From: Oopsacas minuta
Taxonomy: Eukaryota > Animalia > Porifera
Direction: 5' to 3'
Length of the DNA stretch: 64,000 nt
Assembly: GCA_024704765.1 (NCBI GenBank)
Contig: JAKMXF010000300.1
Span: 124,001-188,000, forward strand
Shown: in pieces, positions 31,237-42,138 of the stretch
Layout: every line of letters starts with the position of its first letter
Numbering within the stretch: the stretch's first letter is position 1
Notes under the pieces: generated by a model
What the model saw: only the letters and a program-made list of their open reading frames with translations
The model's database searches: none
Told to the model about the DNA's origin: nothing
Position numbers and translations under genes: made by a program

Positions 31237-34200
31237 ATGGAATATTATTCAGGAGAGACAGATAATGAACCATTCAATTTCTTTACAACCAAACCTCCCG
31301 AGAAAGGAAAGAGGCTATTTTTGTACCAGAATGGACATAATAAAATGTTTAAAACTTTCGTTTACAACAGTAGAAATGTGAGAGATTTCAGTTCTTTCTT
31401 AAATCAGGTTACATATGCAGTTGATGCACCTGCAGCTGTACGTAATATATACACACCACATGAAGGCCATCGAGTTAAGAACTTAGATAATTTGAAAGAT
31501 GGCGCGAGTTATGTTGTTGGTGGTAAGGAAGGTTTTAAGCAAGTTAGGTTAGTATTCAATAAATTGAATCAGGTTTCTATGGGGCCACTGTCATGTTAGT
31601 TGGTAACTTGTTTCAGCTCCTCCGCCCGCATCAAGTTTACCTGCCGCGTGAATATTGTCATTATTTCACCATTTTCTCAGTGAAATTCAACTACACATAT
31701 ATTTTCTAACAGGTGAATAGTAGTGATTTTATCTTCACAGATCGAAGTAGATTAAACGAAAAATTTCCATGAATTGGCCACTTTGTATTATGAAAATGTG
31801 TAGCTGAAACGAGTTTCTCATTAACAGGGGCCTAATTGTATTTAGTATTTACAATATTTCTTATAGCTATGGAATGGGACATAGTGTGAGGAATATATCA
31901 CTCAGAAAATCACTGGATACCAAGGTAATATACTTTATACAATAAATATACACAGAATATTTTCATTTATATATTCCTATAGAGTTTAGTATTACCTCCA
32001 CTACCACCTTTACCAAAGCAAATAATTGCTCAAGCTAGATTCCTAGACAATACAAATAGACCTATTGTGATCACGTAAGTAATTTATAATGTATGTCCTA
32101 TAACATTCAAGGTATAAATAGTAATTCTGCCAAATGTATCTGTACATTCTTTGAGTATTATGTTAAGCTTGTCAGCTGCTCCTAGAATAAGCCCAAATTG
32201 GGCTTGTTGTAGCTCAGAATTGTCATTCATGTGTGTTACTATTGATATTCCTTTTCCCATGATTTCTATGCTAACCAAACCGGCAGAAAATCCTCCTTGG
32301 AATTTTATTTCTATTACTTCTATTCTGACGTCCTCTTTAAATTGGAATGAAATTGATTGAAATTTCCCTTGTTCAGAATTCCAACATGTTTCTTCGTTTC
32401 CATCTAGTAAATGCTGTTTTCCAAACTGTTTCACATCTTTGTTCAAGACTGAACTTACTCTTATTTTCGCTATCAAATAATTAATATTACTTTCTTGAGC
32501 TAATAATCCTGATCCTGCTGTTGCCATTTGAATAAATATTCTCTAATTAGATGTGTAGATAATATCTATGGATTATTTCATTATATATTGGTTGTTCATA
32601 ATTGTATAATGCAATTACACTATAAATGCAATATTCGATGCGGACACTAGCCGTAACAGGGGTTGTTCTTGTTTGCAAGTTTTAACAAATTTACATGTGT
32701 GTGGACAGCCAATCGCCCAATATCTTATCATACACACTTTTCTAAGGTGATAATTAAACAACTTTAGGAGCATATTGCTTCTTTTGGCGAATTCATTCCA
32801 ATGATGTTTATTTGTAACAACTTCATAAGTCTATTGTTTATTTGCTATTCAATTATATAGACAATGTATTGTGTACGTAAGTCAGGTAAATTGCCCATCA
32901 CCATTCATACAAATATTACGCCTAAACAAATAAAAGTAGGAATCCTGTTCATGTAGGTATAATGACATCTTTCAATAAATAGCCAAACTGTTGTATTGTA
33001 TAGTCCATAATACTATATTTACTTTTGCATTTCTTCTTAAAATATTTCAAAATGGAGCTTTCATTACATATGGTCGCGGTTTTTCATGTAATTACAAGTG
33101 TATGTGGATTCGTTATTGGTACTTGTGTCTTGACGTATGCTCTCGTCAACTTGGCAACTTTCATCGAGCTAGGACTCATCGTATTCGGCTCATATTTCAT
33201 TTTTATAAGTATAGTATATTTCTTGTTATTTTCAATGAGTTACTTGTGTGATTCATGTTCATTGAGAACTTTAAAGTGGATCTGGTATTCTTATTCTCTC
33301 TTCACTCTATTTGTGATCATTCTAGACACCGTTACTGTTTTCTATCTGTTTATATCTGTTTGTTTGGGTGCAAACGTTAGCTCGCTTCTAGTTTGTTCGC
33401 TACTACTCTTGGCATATATAATTGTGAAGATAATTCTTTGTTGTTTCCAAATTAAATCATTGAGTGTTTCCGCTAAAACAGAACCTGCAGTACGAATTAA
33501 TGCAGAAACAGAACCCCCCTCTTATATTGAAGTTTGTCCAGAACTTGTAAACACTCTTCCTCCATCTTATCGTGATGTTATTGTTGACGTAGAATCTAAT
33601 AAACAGACTTGTGATGAAGTTTGAATCGTTGAGCGCGAACTCAACCAAAATCTCTAAATTAAATTCTATATTTTCTTATTCAGCTCCGCTATTGTGTTGT
33701 TTTATTATAGGAGTTTCATTATATTTTCACTTTATTTTCTTACAACTTATATTAACATATTTAGGAATAAATAAAGTTATTGGTTTATTATTATATAAGA
33801 ATTTGTTAATGTTATTCTGAATTGAGGAGGGAAGTATGTTGTTTGTGTCCAAATAATAATTTAGCTAACGCCTGAATTATATACGCTATGCATTAACAAA
33901 TTTGCTTTGTTATGATGGGCTTAAGAATTGCTAGATGGCAAAAATGTGAAGCAAACACGCCAAAGCTCATAATATACGTACAATTTCAATCCTCAAATTC
34001 TATTTTTTTGGAAATATTTTGTTTATTATAGTGTCTATCGTAATGGTGAACTACAGCAAAAAGGAAGTAAGATTCTATTGACACAGAGAGAATTGACTTC
34101 ATGGGAACGAGTTAGTAGTTATTGAATAATTATTTTGAGATATTTATTCCCATCTTTTTAGGTTTTGGAAATTATAACTGATAAGTCTGGCCTATTTTCA

Positions 34201-37200
34201 TCTGCTAAAAAGTATGTCTAATTCGCGTCTACACTTATAATAATATTTATTATTTATATTTATTCCACAGAGTATATACAACTGAAGGGAAAAGGATTAA
34301 ATTATTGGCAGACTTTGTGCATCAAGGAAAATATGTTGCAGTAGAGCCTAATAGGTAATATTATTGATTTTCACAAATATTTGGCTTCAAAATACAGTGA
34401 AACCTCGTCAATACGAACAACCATCCGACGGTCAAATTTGTTCGCTTTATCCAGAGAAATACCAATTGAATAATCATGTTAGGACCTGATTTTGTTGTCT
34501 TATCTGGAAATTCTTATTAGCCGTGTTTGTATTCACGAGGGCCGACTGTACGTGTCATTTCAATGTGTATCGAAACTTATCATCCTCAGGATTATACGTA
34601 TAAATGAGACCTTCCATAACTATGAATTTTGGCTTAAGAAATAATCCCTTGTGGATAAAATTAGTGATGTCAGGTAACCTGAGCTACTCACTACAAATAT
34701 GACTATACTGAGATTATCTATCTTGATAAGATATTAGATTAAAATATTTACTGATTATATTCTATGTCTCAATCTCAACATATTAAAGTTTTAATTGTGG
34801 GTGGACATCGAGTTGGTAAAACTACACTATTTTGTCAGCTTGTCCGAGGACAAAGCTTCCCTGGAGGCAATGACTCATTAAAACAATCAAGCGAGTACAT
34901 TATACTCAATGGTAATTTGCATATAGAAATACATGATTGTCTAGTTTCATCCCCTAAGTCATTGATAACGCAAACATGGCGAAATGTGAATGCAATTATA
35001 TACATGTTCTCATATGAAGATCTGAGATCGCTACATGAAGTTTCGGTTTGGTTTCGTCACGTAAAGGAGCTGCTGTGTGACGGACTTGTCCACCAAATTA
35101 TCGTCGGAAACAAAGTAGATTTGGCTAAGATTTCGGAGGAGGAATCCTTCGATTCCACACTAAAGACGCTTTGTAAGGAATTGAGTGTAACAGATCAAGA
35201 TAAATTTTCTGTAACAGCTACTACAGGTGACGGAATCGATGCAATTAAAGCTAGAATTGGTGAAAAGTTTCGTGAATATGTTACTCGGGGTCCCTTTCCT
35301 GATTCCTTATGTATTGTCCCACGTCAAACCCATTCAGGCTGTATGTGTATTAACTAGAATACTCTGATTTGGTATAATTTATATGTGATTACAATTCTAT
35401 TGTATTGATGCTAGGAATATATTATTAAGCTCTTTCTATTCGCATCGGATACGGATGGAAGAGTTCTTATAATCCATCTCAATATTTTGTAATTAGTAAA
35501 GTAGAACTCAGAATAATTACGTCATATCTGAGTAGATATTGTGTTAAAATGAATGGGAACTAAAATTTGGTGTGAGAGAAGGAGTGTACGTCTTATCCGA
35601 ATTATACCATATTACTTGTATTATTACAATTATGATTGCAATAACAGTTGCAGTAGAAACTCGTTTCCATTACACCTAAAAGTATTGAAATTATTACTAA
35701 TTCCTCTGGAGAAGAAGTAAAGTTTTTGACATATTCCCTGGTGTGCTTACTAGTAGTTCCTACTGACATTCCCGTGTTACATTTTATTACATTAAGTGTT
35801 GTATTCACAATCTAAAGTTAATAAGAACTACGTACTATCATAATGAAATGGGAAATGGTACATGGAACCTGATATTTGGTTCCATGTGATAAGATGTTTG
35901 GGGAATATCTAATGATGAATTTTCCTAATATTGATACCTACTTATGATAATAACTAGAATGTTGACGGGGTAACGAGGTTCTTACTGGAATTTACTAACT
36001 CCAGTAGAACCTCGAATTCACACATTTCAACGAGTTTGGAAATATCCACATTTTATTGTCCTAAGATAGTAATTAGAGCAAGCATATTTGTAGTTAATTT
36101 ATACAACAATATGCATCATCAGTCTTAGTACCAACAGGTTTATCAATTGGTAGACGATCTTTTACTCTTGGTCGTTTGTTTATGTAATCTTGACCTATTT
36201 CGTTAATCATTTCTGGAATACCTTCTCCCGTAGTTCCAGATACTTTAAAATTGTGTTTGCTTTCTATCAAAGGTTTTATTCTAGCAATACTATCATTAAT
36301 GCCATCTTCAGGTGGAACTAGGTCGCATTTATTCCCTACTAGACAGTTTATAACGCTAGACTCATGTGAGATATTCTTGTATATTGATTGATACCATTTA
36401 CCCATCTCCTCAACCGAGCTTTTGCGGTCCAATGAATACACGCACAATACTATGTCTAGGTTGCGACAAAGCGTAGTGTTAATTGAAGTGGGTGTGGCAC
36501 TGATAGTGTCACGTACTTGGATGTTAATCTGTTGACCCTGTGCTGTCCAAGAAGCTAGACCAGTATCCTCAGAAATTGGGTATAGAGAGCGAGGGGCTTG
36601 CGAACGATACATAATCTGGTTAAATATTACTGTCTTCCCGACAGATTTCCCTCCAATAATTAGTATATTACAAGTAGACATCGTCCAATGAGTATTTTAT
36701 CTTGTTAATATTGCCTAATGAGACTTTATCTTAATTTACATATCCAATTGATTCTATCGTATTTATATTATATAATTACAGATGATGTATTCAAAATTAA
36801 TAATCTCACTTCTGTCCGCCATAAATATGTCCTTGGAAATAACTAGAAATATCCAAACAGTATATTTTGTAAATGCTAATAGTTCTCAAGCAATGGTACA
36901 ATTAACTTTTATTATTTTTCAGTATTTTCCAGGAATTTCTGTATGTTCTTCCCCTTGAAACAATACTAATAATCATTTAATTCGGTAGACATAATATTTC
37001 ATTCCTCCCTAATTTGTATTTTACTAATTTAATCTCATCGACACGTGTTTTGATTAAATTTGTATACATCATCTTTTGGGGATAAGATATATAAATGAAG
37101 GAATATTCAGTTTTACATTAAAATAGCTTGAACTCTGATAGACAATGTCTAATTGTAATATACTAATCGTTGGAGGAAAATCTGTCGGGAAGACAGTAAT

Positions 37201-40200
37201 ATTTAACCAGATTACGTATCGTTCAACAACACCTCGCTTTCTCTACCCAATTTCTGAGGATACTGGTATAGCTTCTTGGACAGCACAGGGTCAACAGATT
37301 AACATCCAAGTACGTGACACTATCAGTGCCACACCCACTTCAATAAATGCTACACTATGCCGCAACCTTGACATAATATTATTTGTGTATTCGTTAGATA
37401 GAAAAAGCTCAGTTGAGGAGCTGGGTGAATGGCACGATTTAATATACAGGTTTATCCCACCTGACGTCATCAGCTGTTTAGTAGGCAATAAATGTGATCT
37501 AGTTACATCTGATGAAGGTTTCAATGATAGTATTGTTAGAATAAAACCTATCATTGGAAGCAAACACAATTTTAAGGTATCGGCTGTTACGGGAGAGGGT
37601 ATTCCGCAGATGGTTGAAAAAATAGCGCGTGATTACTTGACGAAACAACCAAGACAGCCTACTGGTGGTGTAATAGTCGGGGGAATACGTACCCCTCCTG
37701 GTGATGCATATTGTTGTATTAATTAATTATTTGGTTTATTTATTTCTCTCATTTGTGTATACTCATAATATTGTTTGAATGTTATAATTTCATTTATATG
37801 CCAACACTAAAATTCATTGAGCAATCTTTCATATACATTCAATATGCTGTTATGCTAATTCTAATAAAGAAACAGCATTTCTTCCTTGCCAAGGAAATTC
37901 CCTAAAATAGTATAGAGCATTTCTATTAGCAGTAATTACTGTTACAAACGAATAAAGTAATTTGATCTAGTTAATGCATTACTTTACATGGGACTATTTC
38001 ACAGACACTTTAAGAAGCTTCCTTATGGTGCTATTGAGTTACTAGCAGGGCAATCTCCTCTAAAAATCTCGCGGTGAGTTATAATTATTTCCAGAACTTG
38101 TTGCTTTGTGTATTTACATGAATTGTCTGTTATGTTCTATACTCTCGTGGTGTATGTATACTGAGTAAGATTTGTATTAGCATCCCCCAAGTATGATATA
38201 ACATTACTCAAGATATTTTTAATAATCCAGTACTATACTCTCCAGGCAATTCCTAATATTCCATCAGCTTTAAATTATTCTAGTCATTATATTTGACCAC
38301 ATTTACACCTAACTGTAAATATTAGATCAAATCCATATTCATATTCACTTTTGAGATAAGCAATGTTTAGACGGAGTTTAATGTAATTTTAAGTGCATTT
38401 TTCGGTCATTTTGCCTCTTTCTAATTATGCAGGTGTTTTGATAGTGGGGCAATCCTATTAGCAATTCGCTTATTAGCAATTTGCTTTTGGGCAAGTTTTA
38501 CCTGCAAAATTCTGATATCCGAAACATGATTTTACAATTTTAATTGACTGTATATTATTTCTTAAGACCAATTGGGAGTCATCCTGTTCTAATGAGGAGA
38601 AAACGAATTGTTTACAGACCAAATGTAAAGAGTGAAGCTAGTCTATCTAATGTTATAACAACTCTACCCCAACAAGCTCCTCTCACTCTACAACCTATTG
38701 TACGTAAGATAATTACATCTTATATCAGTGTTTTAATTATATTTTCTCTGTAATTTTCTAGGATAATCCTGATAGAAAAATCAAGAAAATTAGCGTTTCT
38801 AAACAGAGACCTCTTGGGGGAAGAAGAGATAAGGAAAAAAGAGAACTAGAAAAATTCAAATTTAAAGTTAGAGAGGTAATATCGCAATATTCAAAGCTAT
38901 TTACATTGTGCAATTCTCGTATGTTCTAATTTTATTCTTTTCCAATTTCACCTAAATCTGAATCAATTAGTAAGCATGAAATATTATGAAATATTCTATT
39001 GTATATTTACTTTTGCATATATAAATAATTGTGTGATTTGTTGTGTCAGAATTGATATTATATAACAAACCATTTGGTAACTGTTTATTAGATTTGCCCA
39101 ATTTACTACATAACACACTACTACGGTATTGAGCTTTTCTTCTGTGGCCCTTTCAGCAAAATAACCCGATATCTTCACTATTTCTATTAATTAATGGTTA
39201 AATATTTCAATTTTTTTTAGGACTCAGCATTTGCCCCAAGCAGTGCTACACTTCCTCAAGTAGATCGCACCGTAAACTCACCAGATGAACAAGAGGGTGT
39301 AATCTATCCTTCTAATAATTTAGAAGAAACTCAACATACTTCTGTGCCCAAACAAGATAGTGTAATAAAGGCAGAGACATACTATCCATTAGCTGAGGGA
39401 GAAGTTGAAGATGCTCCTGGTAAGTTATTGTTTGTATTTATAATTTTCTAGAATAGTTTTCCCCATAGTTCGTATAGAATAAACTTTTCCACGATTGAAA
39501 GATTTTGATTCCTAGATCTTTTAATTTTATGCGCGTCTCGAAAATATGTTTATTCGCCCAGAACATGGAGCCTAAACTACGTCTAATAAACTGTATTAAA
39601 TGAACAACTTTGCAATAAACGTGTAGCCAGGGCAAAATTGATCCTGTGCTAATTTAAGCCTCAGGGTCGGCGCTTTGTGTCCTTCATGTCTGATGAACTG
39701 GCACTCTTGATCCCCGCCAAGCACCTAGATAAATCCCTGCGTGTAGCCTAGAAATTCAACATATCTTCTCATGCAATAGTCAACAATATTTCACGTGATT
39801 GTCGCATACAAGAAAGTTCACCATATAAGGTGTACCAACTAGTAGAAATAACGTCAGATCTAATTTACAGCTAATCTTACTATATTCATTAATCCTTACA
39901 AACGATCCCATTGCTAAACTGTGCACTAAACTCTATACACTGTTTTGTAGAGGTTATTCCTCACAGGTCATGTTATTTTAATCATTACATATACAGTATT
40001 TTATTACTTAATATCCAACAGTTGAACTAATAGTGAGAAAGACGTTACTGTGTATTATTGTAGATACTTTCACTTTCAAACATTCCTTGTTTGGAATTTG
40101 AATATTCTCCATAATTTAGGAATAAACAATTATTAATAATTGAAAACTGCTTTCAATGCTTACATTTACAGTTTCCATTTTGAAAGTTTTGTAAGGTTAT

Positions 40201-41591
40201 TTGATTCAATTGCTAGGATTGGTTACAGAAAAGCCTGTGGACTTGCTACCAACAGAGGAAGTACATGAAGAGTCTGTAGACTCTGTACAACCACGAATAC
40301 AGGTATACTACATGAAATGCACAAGGTTATACTCCCTCAATATACAGTGGAGTTTGTTTATTAGCAATAGAGGTTTGGTTCACAAACAGTTGTTAATAGG
40401 GGAAAATTACAAAATATACGCTTTGGACCTGAAAAATAATTAACAAATATTGATACAATGAATACTCGTTATAACTATGTAAGTGCTTGGAATCAAGGTT
40501 CATTCGTTGTAAACAGAGTAAAGCTATATGTGGTATTTGTTATAAGGGAGTTTACTGTATTAAGCGAGATTCTAATAACTGAACCTTCTGTATACGTATC
40601 ATATTTATATGAACTTTGAACTTTAGACTCAACAGAACGACTTACCAACAGCTGATCACAGTATAACTGAAACGTCAATACCAGTTGATCAAGTAGATGT
40701 ACAGCCTCATGTATCTAGCATAGAACCTAACATTCCTGATCCACAACGCGAATCAACTCAAATTGAAGATAATTCCCTGAATGTCACAGATCTTCAAGAC
40801 CAACCAAAAATTGCCGTTACTAATGAAGATAATCAGGTGATTGCTGCGGATAGCACTGAAGCAGATAATGGTGTAACTTTTGACAAGAGTGATACTTCTG
40901 TGACAGATAATATTCCTGTTATTACTAATACTAATCAAACACAGTTGGAAACAGCTAAGGGAATTTGTATCAATGATGCTATTACGCATCAACAGTTGAA
41001 ACAGTTGGAGAGAGACACGGAAGAACATTTGCGGGCAAATGAAAATAATGTAAGCCAGGGCACGGGGGACGAAACTAAGGGAGCACATGGAGAGGGGAAC
41101 AATTCCGCGAATGTAAGTTCTAAATAATTAACTCTTCTTAATTCAATATTTATTTCACTGAGTTGTACGGTAATACAGTATTGATAGCATGCCCTGCAAA
41201 TTCTGCTGATAATAAAGTAATTAGTATACCTAACAGTATTTTTAGAAATTACAACTCACCATTTTGATAATAATGTAAGACTTTTGATTCCTGGAAAGTA
41301 CAAAAATTTATATTGAAAGTAAAACTGGACTTTTCAATCAGATACTAATGTTAATCCCTATATATTTCTATGATCTAAGGTTTATTGTACTTTTGTATTG
41401 TAGAAAATCATTTTGGAAATCTTTTCGGAATCCTTTCAATTGTGTGTATAATTCTAATAATCTATAATACGTTTATTTCCAAATTTCAAACAATAAACTT
41501 TCAATCACGAGGTGACCTTACAAATTTAATTATATATATTTATATGAATAATTATGTTAGCTAACCTCTCCTTTAGAATGGATCTACATGA
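31237..41591 (+). CDS. Doublecortin domain-containing protein (DCDC2-like), 13 exons: 31237-31547, 31867-31924, 31983-32074, 34032-34110, 34162-34211, 34271-34354, 38005-38073, 38567-38699, 38762-38875, 39221-39419, 40217-40302, 40627-41112, 41577-41591; ~591 aa
   Basis: Phase-consistent GT-AG chain (1776 nt). DCX1 (LYQNG...VRNIYTP...YVVGGKEGFKQVSY), linker ARFLDNTNRPIVI, DCX2 (VYRNG...VLEIITDK...KVYTTEG...YVAVEPNRHFKKLPY), C-terminal EKPVDLLPTEEVHEE similar to the DCDC2 EVPVDQRPAE motif. The last exon is less certain. Confidence 0.85.
32084..32527 (-). CDS. NR2C2AP: Nuclear receptor 2C2-associated protein (TRA16), intronless, nested antisense in DCDC2-like intron 3
   Basis: RVSSVLNKDVKQFGKQHLLDGNEETCWNSEQG, FQGGFSAG, DTFGRITIYTLNVIG. 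Confidence 0.9.
   Translation of the reverse strand: MATAGSGLLAQESNINYLIAKIRVSSVLNKDVKQFGKQHLLDGNEETCWNSEQGKFQSISFQFKEDVRIEVIEIKFQGGFSAGLVSIEIMGKGISIVTHMNDNSELQQAQFGLILGAADKLNIILKECTDTFGRITIYTLNVIGHTL
33052..33624 (+). CDS. Uncharacterised 4TM protein with two C-terminal PPxY motifs, nested same-strand in DCDC2-like intron 3
   Basis: First ATG at 33052; four hydrophobic segments; tail EPPSYIEV and LPPSYRDV. Confidence 0.75.
   Translation: MELSLHMVAVFHVITSVCGFVIGTCVLTYALVNLATFIELGLIVFGSYFIFISIVYFLLFSMSYLCDSCSLRTLKWIWYSYSLFTLFVIILDTVTVFYLFISVCLGANVSSLLVCSLLLLAYIIVKIILCCFQIKSLSVSAKTEPAVRINAETEPPSYIEVCPELVNTLPPSYRDVIVDVESNKQTCDEV
34395..34548. mobile_element. TA-flanked MITE
   Basis: ta|cagtgaaacctcgtcaatacgaaca ... 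tgtttgtattcacgagggccgactg|ta. Confidence 0.65.
34764..35357 (+). CDS. Atypical Ras-superfamily small GTPase 1, intronless, nested in DCDC2-like intron 6
   Basis: G1 GGHRVGKT, G4 NKVD, G5-like VTA; G3 reads HDCLV; C-terminus CMCIN. Confidence 0.85.
   Translation: MSQSQHIKVLIVGGHRVGKTTLFCQLVRGQSFPGGNDSLKQSSEYIILNGNLHIEIHDCLVSSPKSLITQTWRNVNAIIYMFSYEDLRSLHEVSVWFRHVKELLCDGLVHQIIVGNKVDLAKISEEESFDSTLKTLCKELSVTDQDKFSVTATTGDGIDAIKARIGEKFREYVTRGPFPDSLCIVPRQTHSGCMCIN
35500..35605. mobile_element. Degenerate MITE (family E)
   Basis: Similar to 22829-22972 by eye. Confidence 0.4.
36094..36681 (-). CDS. Atypical Ras-superfamily small GTPase 2, intronless, nested in DCDC2-like intron 6
   Basis: G1 GGKSVGKT, G4 NKCD, G5-like VSG; G3 RDTISA; C-terminus YCCIN. 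Confidence 0.85.
   Translation of the reverse strand: MSTCNILIIGGKSVGKTVIFNQIMYRSQAPRSLYPISEDTGLASWTAQGQQINIQVRDTISATPTSINTTLCRNLDIVLCVYSLDRKSSVEEMGKWYQSIYKNISHESSVINCLVGNKCDLVPPEDGINDSIARIKPLIESKHNFKVSGTTGEGIPEMINEIGQDYINKRPRVKDRLPIDKPVGTKTDDAYCCIN
37145..37726 (+). CDS. Atypical Ras-superfamily small GTPase 3 (close paralog of GTPase 2), nested in DCDC2-like intron 6
   Basis: G1 GGKSVGKT, G4 NKCD, G5-like VSA; G3 RDTISA; C-terminus YCCIN. Confidence 0.85.
   Translation: MSNCNILIVGGKSVGKTVIFNQITYRSTTPRFLYPISEDTGIASWTAQGQQINIQVRDTISATPTSINATLCRNLDIILFVYSLDRKSSVEELGEWHDLIYRFIPPDVISCLVGNKCDLVTSDEGFNDSIVRIKPIIGSKHNFKVSAVTGEGIPQMVEKIARDYLTKQPRQPTGGVIVGGIRTPPGDAYCCIN
39628..39739. mobile_element. 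hAT-type MITE with a perfect 8-bp TSD, in DCDC2-like intron 10
   Basis: CGTGTAGC|CAGGG ... CCCTG|CGTGTAGC; shares tgtgtccttcat..ctg..gaactgg...ccaagcacctagataaa with 25917-26050. Confidence 0.85.
40345..40557. mobile_element. One or two adjacent TA-flanked MITE remnants in DCDC2-like intron 11
   Basis: ta|cagtgg... at 40345; tacaatgaatactcgttataac near 40455; right end ttataagggagtttactg|ta. Confidence 0.45.
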
Positions 41592-42138
41592 GTTCAATAT
41601 AACCACACAACAACCTTATCTCTTACGCAGCAAAGTACTCCACTTTTCTTAACTATCCTATTACCAATATAATATATCTCAATAATGTACTGACTGTATT
41701 TATGCTTATGTCTTCTGAACTTTTACTCTTGGCCAATTCTTCACTTTACTTTCTACTTGTGCACAGCCATTGTATATTACTTGTACGCACGTGTTTATAG
41801 TAGACATAACCAAGTTCGTTGGAAAATGGCAGAGAATTACTTATGCGGTAAGGCAGATACCTGATTATCTATATTGGTTTTAACTAAGGAATTCCATTTA
41901 TTAATTATTTTCTCTGCTACATGTCAATAATAATATCAACCCCATCATGAATGAAATTATTCAAAAATTGCTGGATTTATCAATTTAAGATTTTACGCTC
42001 CCTGGAATGAGAATGGTTATGAAAAATCCTGGGACCGTCCCTGAATTCTATTACATTAATTATTATCCAAGATATTCATCCTCTATTAGTTATTTCCTCT
42101 AAATATATAACCCTGATTAAAGCAACATAATATACAAA

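Follow-up and report, generated by a model that had tools for sequence, protein, structure and literature searches.

Does a series of small exons scattered over roughly ten kilobases of a sponge genome belong to one gene, when two of the intervals between them are occupied by five other genes, and how did these guests come to lie there? The question is raised by a stretch of 64,000 nt from the glass sponge Oopsacas minuta (GenBank assembly GCA_024704765.1, contig JAKMXF010000300.1, positions 124,001 to 188,000, forward strand; hereafter the window, from whose first letter all positions are counted). The host candidate is a DCDC2-like gene with two doublecortin (DCX) domains. Its intron 3 contains a gene for NR2C2AP (- strand) and a gene for a four-helix membrane protein with PPxY motifs (4TM, + strand), and its intron 6 contains three Ras-like GTPase genes (GTP1, GTP2 and GTP3, on the +, - and + strands). 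The best explanation overall, judged from predicted exons and their recurrence in related genomes, is one host gene spliced across both guest-filled introns, to which we assign a probability of about 0.86. By the same kind of comparison, introns 3 and 6 appear to have been filled before the sampled sponge lineages split.

Structure of the host gene

The predicted host gene occupies 31237-41127 of the + strand (~9.9 kb) and consists of 12 exons separated by 11 GT-AG introns, in a window of ~33% GC. Continuity of the frame was judged by arithmetic and by translation of each exon, and the searches used single exons; on this basis, the phases are consistent from exon 1 to exon 12, with zero in-frame stops, and the exons add up to 591 codons plus a stop. 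Nine of the 11 introns span 51-797 nt, and the two long ones are intron 3 (32075-34031; 1,957 nt) and intron 6 (34355-38004; 3,650 nt), the latter interrupting the second DCX domain (DCX2). The exons are given below ("relatives" are the related loci described further on):

31237-31547, + strand: exon 1, with the start codon and the first DCX domain; phase 2 donor GTTAGT
31867-31924, + strand: exon 2, 58 nt, linker; length and AG/GT borders kept in five relatives
31983-32074, + strand: exon 3, 92 nt, proline-rich linker reaching the start of DCX2; phase 2 donor GTAAGT
34032-34110, + strand: exon 4, 79 nt, first strand of DCX2 (VYRNG...)
34162-34211, + strand: exon 5, 50 nt, middle of DCX2 (VLEIITDK); donor GTATGT, phase 2
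34271-34354, + strand: exon 6, 84 nt, core of DCX2 (KVYTTEG...VAVEPN); donor GTAATA, phase 2
38005-38073, + strand: exon 7, 69 nt, closes DCX2 (R-HFKKLPY...); phase 2 at both ends
38567-38699, + strand: exon 8, 133 nt, basic linker; 77-82% amino acid (aa) identity in relatives
38762-38875, + strand: exon 9, 114 nt, K/R/E-rich; 82-93% aa identity in relatives
39221-39419, + strand: exon 10, 199 nt, acidic tail
40217-40302, + strand: exon 11, 86 nt, conserved tail motif PVDLLPTEEVHEE; 70-90% aa identity in relatives
40627-41127, + strand: exon 12, last supported exon, through the TAA at 41125-41127

The exon starts proposed in an earlier reading of the letters alone (the sequence-only reading) at 34032, 34162, 34271 and 38005 proved exact, with canonical splice sites and matching phases, and its coordinates for both long introns and the five guests within them were confirmed by the open reading frames (ORFs). 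It was also right that the ORF track betrays only exon 1, the sole listed ORF with a DCX hit being 31237-31599. The gene looks hidden because a six-frame scan of the whole genome picks up exon 1 only. As far as such scans can tell, the host is the only gene with tandem DCX domains that can be detected in O. minuta. The proposal of 13 exons was right in that there is one hidden multi-exon tandem-DCX gene, but only 12 of the exons are supported: the candidate exon 13 (41577-41591) is unsupported, an unspliced exon 12 running to its TAA gives the same length, and no conservation was seen at the site, 3' ends differing among relatives. Exon 12 itself is partially conserved in the relatives, with C-terminal ends that vary, and an AATAAA follows its TAA at 41211.

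Doublecortin domains and family assignment

Exon 1 encodes an N-terminal DCX domain (Pfam DCX, PF03607, E 5e-16, 59 bits compared with a cut-off of 22). The second domain follows after a short linker and is divided among exons 4-7, in which it was recognized exon by exon. On its own, exon 6 already scores above the Pfam DCX threshold, with 24.9 bits (E 2.3e-5) over profile positions 32-55 of 60, and in tblastn searches with two DCDC2-like proteins (P0008 and P0011) exons 4, 6 and 7 match DCX2, exon 7 matching its FKKVPY/FKKLPY end. The pattern typical of the end of a DCX domain, F[KRQ][KRNQ][ILVM].[YF], occurs a single time on the + strand of the locus, at 38009, where it directly follows an AG in the required phase. 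The claim of the sequence-only reading that small exons complete a second DCX domain is borne out by exon 6, which exceeds the cut-off, and exon 7, which supplies the end of the domain.

DCDC2-like proteins of unrelated organisms align in order to exons 1, 4, 6, 7, 10, 11 and 12, and the best full-length named matches are DCDC2-like or DCDC2B, as judged by the names of the top matches and by a common tail motif; this motif of exon 11 (PVD...EEVxEE) matches the tails of the DCDC2-like proteins of Ptychodera, Syssomonas and others. The host resembles the DCDC2 family in having two N-terminal DCX domains followed by a long low-complexity acidic tail with a P[VI]D...EEV motif, and in sharing intron positions 1, 3 and 5 with the Ptychodera gene; it differs in that its first DCX domain is only 35-50% identical and its second is split over four exons. 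DCDC2 family members in other animals are microtubule-binding proteins, and by analogy the sponge protein would be expected to bind microtubules as well. We also observed that the tail motif, P[VI]D with acidic residues, is present twice, as PVDLLPTEEVHEE in exon 11 and as IPVDQVDVQP in exon 12 (~40670-40710); it may be an unrecognized short linear motif of the family.

Conservation of the layout in related loci

Six related loci (L008, L009, L010, L011, L012 and L013) were found via their NR2C2AP-like guest, L009 and L010 coming from the same sample; the five ENA assemblies that hold them are ERZ25069837, ERZ25072740, ERZ25766962, ERZ20067936 and ERZ23489137. In all six the genes follow one another in the order beta-mannosidase, TDP1, a gene for an unknown protein of 490 aa, MUTYH, the guest-bearing DCX gene and MIF. 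The connection of the L013 sample to a study of Vazella pourtalesii is circumstantial only. In the unrooted MUTYH tree the sequences fall into (O. minuta,(L008,L013)), (L011,(L009,L010)) and L012, and the MUTYH proteins are 57-66% identical between groups (34-42% difference between lineages).

Exon-by-exon tblastn recovered 12 of 12 host exons, in order, in all six loci. Exons 2-10 have identical lengths in L008-L012 (58, 92, 79, 50, 84, 69, 133, 114 and 199 nt) with AG/GT at the predicted borders (two exceptions in these five loci, both of them partial or gapped tblastn hits), and in the same loci intron 3 measures 1,547-3,794 nt and intron 6 2,449-3,203 nt. Identity to the relatives at the amino acid level is 77-88% for exon 1 (across all six loci), 85-92% for exon 4, 75-100% for exon 5 and 86-100% for exon 7, the borders of exons 4 and 7 being identical. 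Four of the five guests occupy the same introns in 6/6 loci (GTP2 is the exception). At the nucleotide level, similarity to O. minuta is all but confined to the exons and the coding sequences of the guests. The recurrence of exons, borders and guests in six related loci is far beyond chance.

Both the L009 contig (286 kb) and the L010 contig (705 kb) carry the whole region, with 98% MUTYH identity; they represent either haplotigs or a recent large duplication. Another locus, L002, was rejected for comparison, being a scrambled contig of 3 kb that carries several 3' pieces of MUTYH and shows only that MUTYH adjoins exon 1.

One gene or two

The junction in question is that between exons 6 and 7, which are separated by the 3.65-kb gap holding three genes. 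This gap divides the halves of the predicted gene, and together with the AATAAA/ATTAAA hexamers that it contains on the host strand it would suit two genes, namely a short DCX gene that stops with exon 6 and an independent one built from exons 7-12. However, the end of exon 6 and the start of exon 7 are both in phase 2 in every locus checked, and exon 7 provides just the FKKLPY end that DCX2 would otherwise be missing. In addition, no conserved start codon is available to the 3' half, because exon 7 contains no ATG and the sole Met of exon 8 is Leu in L009 and L010. The ratios of nonsynonymous to synonymous substitution rates (dN/dS; closer pairs) are equally low in both halves (0.10-0.11 in exons 1-6, 0.08 in exons 7-11; 0.12-0.26 in exon 12), which fits one gene, and both pieces lie within a single exon in two more distant organisms (L003 and L004, in which DCX2 is in one exon) and in Ptychodera. 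We therefore regard two separate genes as very unlikely.

The single spliced gene, which we prefer, has points against it as well. AATAAA/ATTAAA hexamers on the host strand are found inside both long introns, so that read-through by the host polymerase is assumed (hexamer counts are uninformative in a genome of 33% GC). A transcript-derived protein with exon 1 was not found among 1.84 billion representatives or in an exon-1 word search, the support for DCX2 is given exon by exon only, and the 3' end proposed for the host is provisional. Finally, that the relatives are glass sponges is inferred from the common gene order. With these points taken into account, the host transcript would run through the guests, and the primary transcript would be spliced at its 11 GT-AG introns into a message of 591 codons.

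The guest genes

The five guests and a repeat copy that shares intron 6 with three of them are as follows:

32084-32527, - strand: guest 1, NR2C2AP orthologue, in intron 3, 147 aa, intronless
33052-33624, + strand: guest 2, orphan four-helix membrane protein (4TM), in intron 3, 190 aa
34390-34495, strand not assigned: dispersed-repeat copy, ~105 nt, inside intron 6
34764-35357, + strand: guest 3, GTP1, Ras-superfamily GTPase-like, in intron 6, 197 aa; Pfam Ras 9e-11, Arf 3e-6
36094-36681, - strand: guest 4, GTP2, in intron 6, 195 aa; inverted duplicate of GTP3
37145-37726, + strand: guest 5, GTP3, in intron 6, 193 aa; Pfam Ras 2.3e-16; ends 279 nt before exon 7

All five guest coding sequences lie wholly between a host donor and the corresponding acceptor, as expected of nested genes. 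The possibility that the arrangement is an assembly artefact, or that the guests are decaying or chance ORFs, seems close to negligible: five independent assemblies show the layout again, in six loci, all five guest ORFs are intact, and their dN/dS values of 0.09-0.22 indicate purifying selection.

The NR2C2AP guest is 41-49% identical, over 83-98% of its length as query, to many proteins named NR2C2AP, and these named orthologues range from amoeboflagellates and fungi to vertebrates. It is 54-72% identical to its counterparts in the sponge relatives (dN/dS 0.11), where its place and strand are kept in all six loci. Only 10 nt separate the stop codon of this guest from the donor of exon 3 (32074-32086) on the opposite strand, a tight spacing that is also kept in the relatives, so the 3' untranslated region of the guest must overlap host exon 3 in antisense; NR2C2AP is thus nested as a coding sequence only.

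The 4TM guest has two invariant C-terminal PPxY motifs in an alignment of six orthologues, with dN/dS of 0.10-0.19, and Pfam gave no family for any of the six. Its architecture (four transmembrane helices and C-terminal PPxY motifs) recalls LAPTM4/5 or other NEDD4 adaptors. An assignment to LAPTM4/5 (PF03821, Mtp) was tried and rejected, as there was no profile match; an ESM Atlas score of 0.82 to LAPTM5 is a weak lead only.

The three GTPase guests all exceed the Pfam Ras cut-off (42-60 bits versus 21.6) and all have the P-loop GxxxxGKT and the NKxD motif. The canonical switch II DxxGQ was not found in any of them, GTP1 having HDCLVS and GTP2 and GTP3 having RDTISA at this site, where the relatives are identical; judged from these motifs, GTP1-3 would be GTPase-like proteins whose catalysis is doubtful. 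GTP1 is 53-70% identical (aa) in the relatives, with place and strand kept and dN/dS of 0.13-0.16. GTP2 and GTP3 are 72% identical in aa and 82.5% identical in nt across 520 bp, in inverted orientation, and the GTP2 duplicate was seen only in O. minuta, the relatives having a single GTP2/3-type gene on the host strand and two GTPase guests in total, both on the host strand. In a word search, members of the GTP2/3 family turned up in this sponge group only.

The repeat copy within intron 6 has at least 40 genome copies at 75-84% identity, and L008 carries a copy elsewhere, in reverse orientation; it could be a miniature inverted-repeat transposable element or a short interspersed element. A further gene is present in intron 3 of some relatives, in antisense, encoding a leucine-rich-repeat (LRR) protein of 530-557 aa (L009 6790-8463, L010 6842-8434 and L011 7281-8900). 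A search of the O. minuta genome with the L009 gene as query did not recover it, which does not prove its absence.

Expression of the guests

The sequence-only reading had noted, correctly, that three of the five guests share the strand of the host (33052-33624, 34764-35357 and 37145-37726), which invites the thought that 4TM, GTP1 and GTP3 are cut from the host transcript in an operon-like manner, by spliced-leader trans-splicing or alternative polyadenylation. Every GTPase guest of the relatives is on the host strand, the two genes being ~262-265 nt apart in L008 and L013, and leader sequences are reported on ~4% of Aphrocallistes vastus long reads in the text of PMC10282587. On the other hand, NR2C2AP/4TM and GTP2/GTP3 are each arranged head to head, with 524 and 463 nt between them, in what looks like the sharing of bidirectional promoters, and one ancestral guest, as well as GTP2, is antisense to the host, so that own promoters are needed. 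Operon-like expression is therefore rather improbable, and we infer instead that the guests are independent intronless transcription units with their own promoters. The presence of such units would be the reason why the long introns are long, with the antisense NR2C2AP and the sense 4TM/PPxY gene arranged head to head in intron 3.

Selection, as opposed to inertia, might also be what maintains the nest, with host transcription gating the guests, in mutually exclusive or coupled expression, as part of a cytoskeletal or ciliary programme. A switch-degenerate GTPase pair, to date encountered in glass sponges only, sits inside DCX2 of the host, on the host strand, and has been kept there across deep glass-sponge divergences. 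We consider this idea speculative and improbable; if it were true, the locus would be a regulatory unit and no accident of compaction.

Age of the introns and arrival of the guests

For intron positions, more distant organisms without the nest were used (L003-L007), in addition to the DCDC2-like gene of Ptychodera flava. The latter has intron positions 1, 3 and 5 in common with the host and does not have positions 4 and 6; its intron 3, at about the same place as that of the host, is roughly 250 nt long and empty. In L007, from a more distant animal, positions 3, 4 and 6 carry introns. Intron 3 there has the same phase as that of the host, and so does intron 6, which is ~75 nt long and empty. 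The introns at positions 3 and 6 thus occur in outgroups as well, where they are short and hold no genes, so the guests entered pre-existing introns.

The sequence of events would then be that intron positions 3 and 6 predate the nest, being short (roughly 75-250 nt) and empty in the outgroups, that the guests moved in before the divergence of the glass-sponge lineages sampled, and that the nest was subsequently inherited almost unchanged. Later changes would have been few: an inverted GTPase duplication in the lineage of O. minuta, the gain or loss of the LRR gene in another clade, and the insertion of a small repeat.

The sequence-only reading had gone further, taking introns to be the main landing sites of new intronless genes; understood as ongoing colonization, this would make the guests recent arrivals. 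The short, empty introns 3 and 6 of the outgroups agree with such colonization, as do the extra LRR gene in intron 3 of one clade and the extra GTPase copy and dispersed-repeat copy in intron 6 of O. minuta. However, four of the five guests are positionally fixed in six loci despite 34-42% divergence of the MUTYH protein, NR2C2AP is pan-eukaryotic, and the extra GTPase is a local inverted duplicate and no arrival from elsewhere; moreover, most genes of this genome are single-exon, nested or not. Ongoing colonization is thus unlikely. What survives of the proposal is that the guests did enter old introns; that landing continues, and that the guests are new genes, finds no support, given the pan-eukaryotic NR2C2AP and the same intron placement of four guests in every relative. 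Whether introns are "main landing sites" is beyond what one locus can decide.

Other features of the locus

Between the 3' end of the DCX gene and MIF, a 73-nt non-coding block (41675-41747) shares 84-85% identity with L008 and L013. A CCAAT lies within it at 41733-41737, ~400 nt upstream of the MIF start codon, and the block may be a MIF promoter element. L012 has two tandem MIF genes downstream of the DCX gene (283-639 and 1879-2337), and there is one in O. minuta, L008 and L013. In the interval 30.5-42.5 kb, neither a tRNA scan nor Rfam (E up to 0.1) gave any match, and for a GC-richer patch in intron 10 no conservation was seen in the relatives.

Comparison with known nesting and with the public annotation

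Nesting in glass sponges, its conservation and the problem that it poses for annotation are already described in the text of Francis et al. 2023 (PMC10282587). According to that text, A. vastus has 2,432 nested genes (12.4%), many of them conserved, compared with 83 in the version 1 annotation of O. minuta, for which the annotation method is blamed; 9,872 of the 16,340 annotated O. minuta genes are single-exon, so that intronless guests are not special here. The present locus is like the nests of A. vastus and O. minuta described there in its intronless guests within a multi-exon host, its compact genome, its conserved layout and its failed automatic annotation. The DCX locus is not mentioned in the text of that paper as searched, and compared with the nests described in it, our locus adds five guests in two introns (one of the introns lying inside a protein domain), three of five guests on the host strand, and outgroup evidence that the introns predate the guests. 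The nested genes of Drosophila and mammals (e.g., PMC5174743) are similar in that short guests lie within long host introns. The Drosophila guests are described as typically young duplicates inserted in long introns, whereas the sponge nest is old and most of its guests are on the host strand.

The difficulty that the sequence-only reading foresaw for automated annotation is probably real, the public annotation apparently missing the host. Proteins containing exon 1 were not found at any length among the 1.84 billion representatives, nor at 57-180 aa by word search, only exon-1 ORFs from relatives being seen, and the deposited proteins seemingly do not include that of the host. GTP1, GTP3, MUTYH and MIF are present as exact proteins in the public collection; for the NR2C2AP, 4TM and exon-1 ORFs no exact sequence was found in it. 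GTP2 is deposited as a 172-aa model (P0281), which falls short of the intact ORF of 195 aa, whose alignment with GTP3 covers both ends. The missing exon-1 protein and the short GTP2 model fit the remark on the annotation method in the text of Francis et al. (PMC10282587).

Significance

The locus is a well-supported further example of the known nesting of genes in glass sponges, with a corrected gene model and no new mechanism. What is gained in practice is this corrected model, for the only tandem-DCX (DCDC2-like) gene that could be detected in a glass sponge. Such a model is relevant to surveys of the cytoskeletal and ciliary genes of early-branching animals, and missing core genes are reportedly stressed in the genome paper on O. 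minuta. The locus also documents the history of a nest, in which two old, short introns would have been filled with genes before the sampled lineages split and would have barely changed since then.

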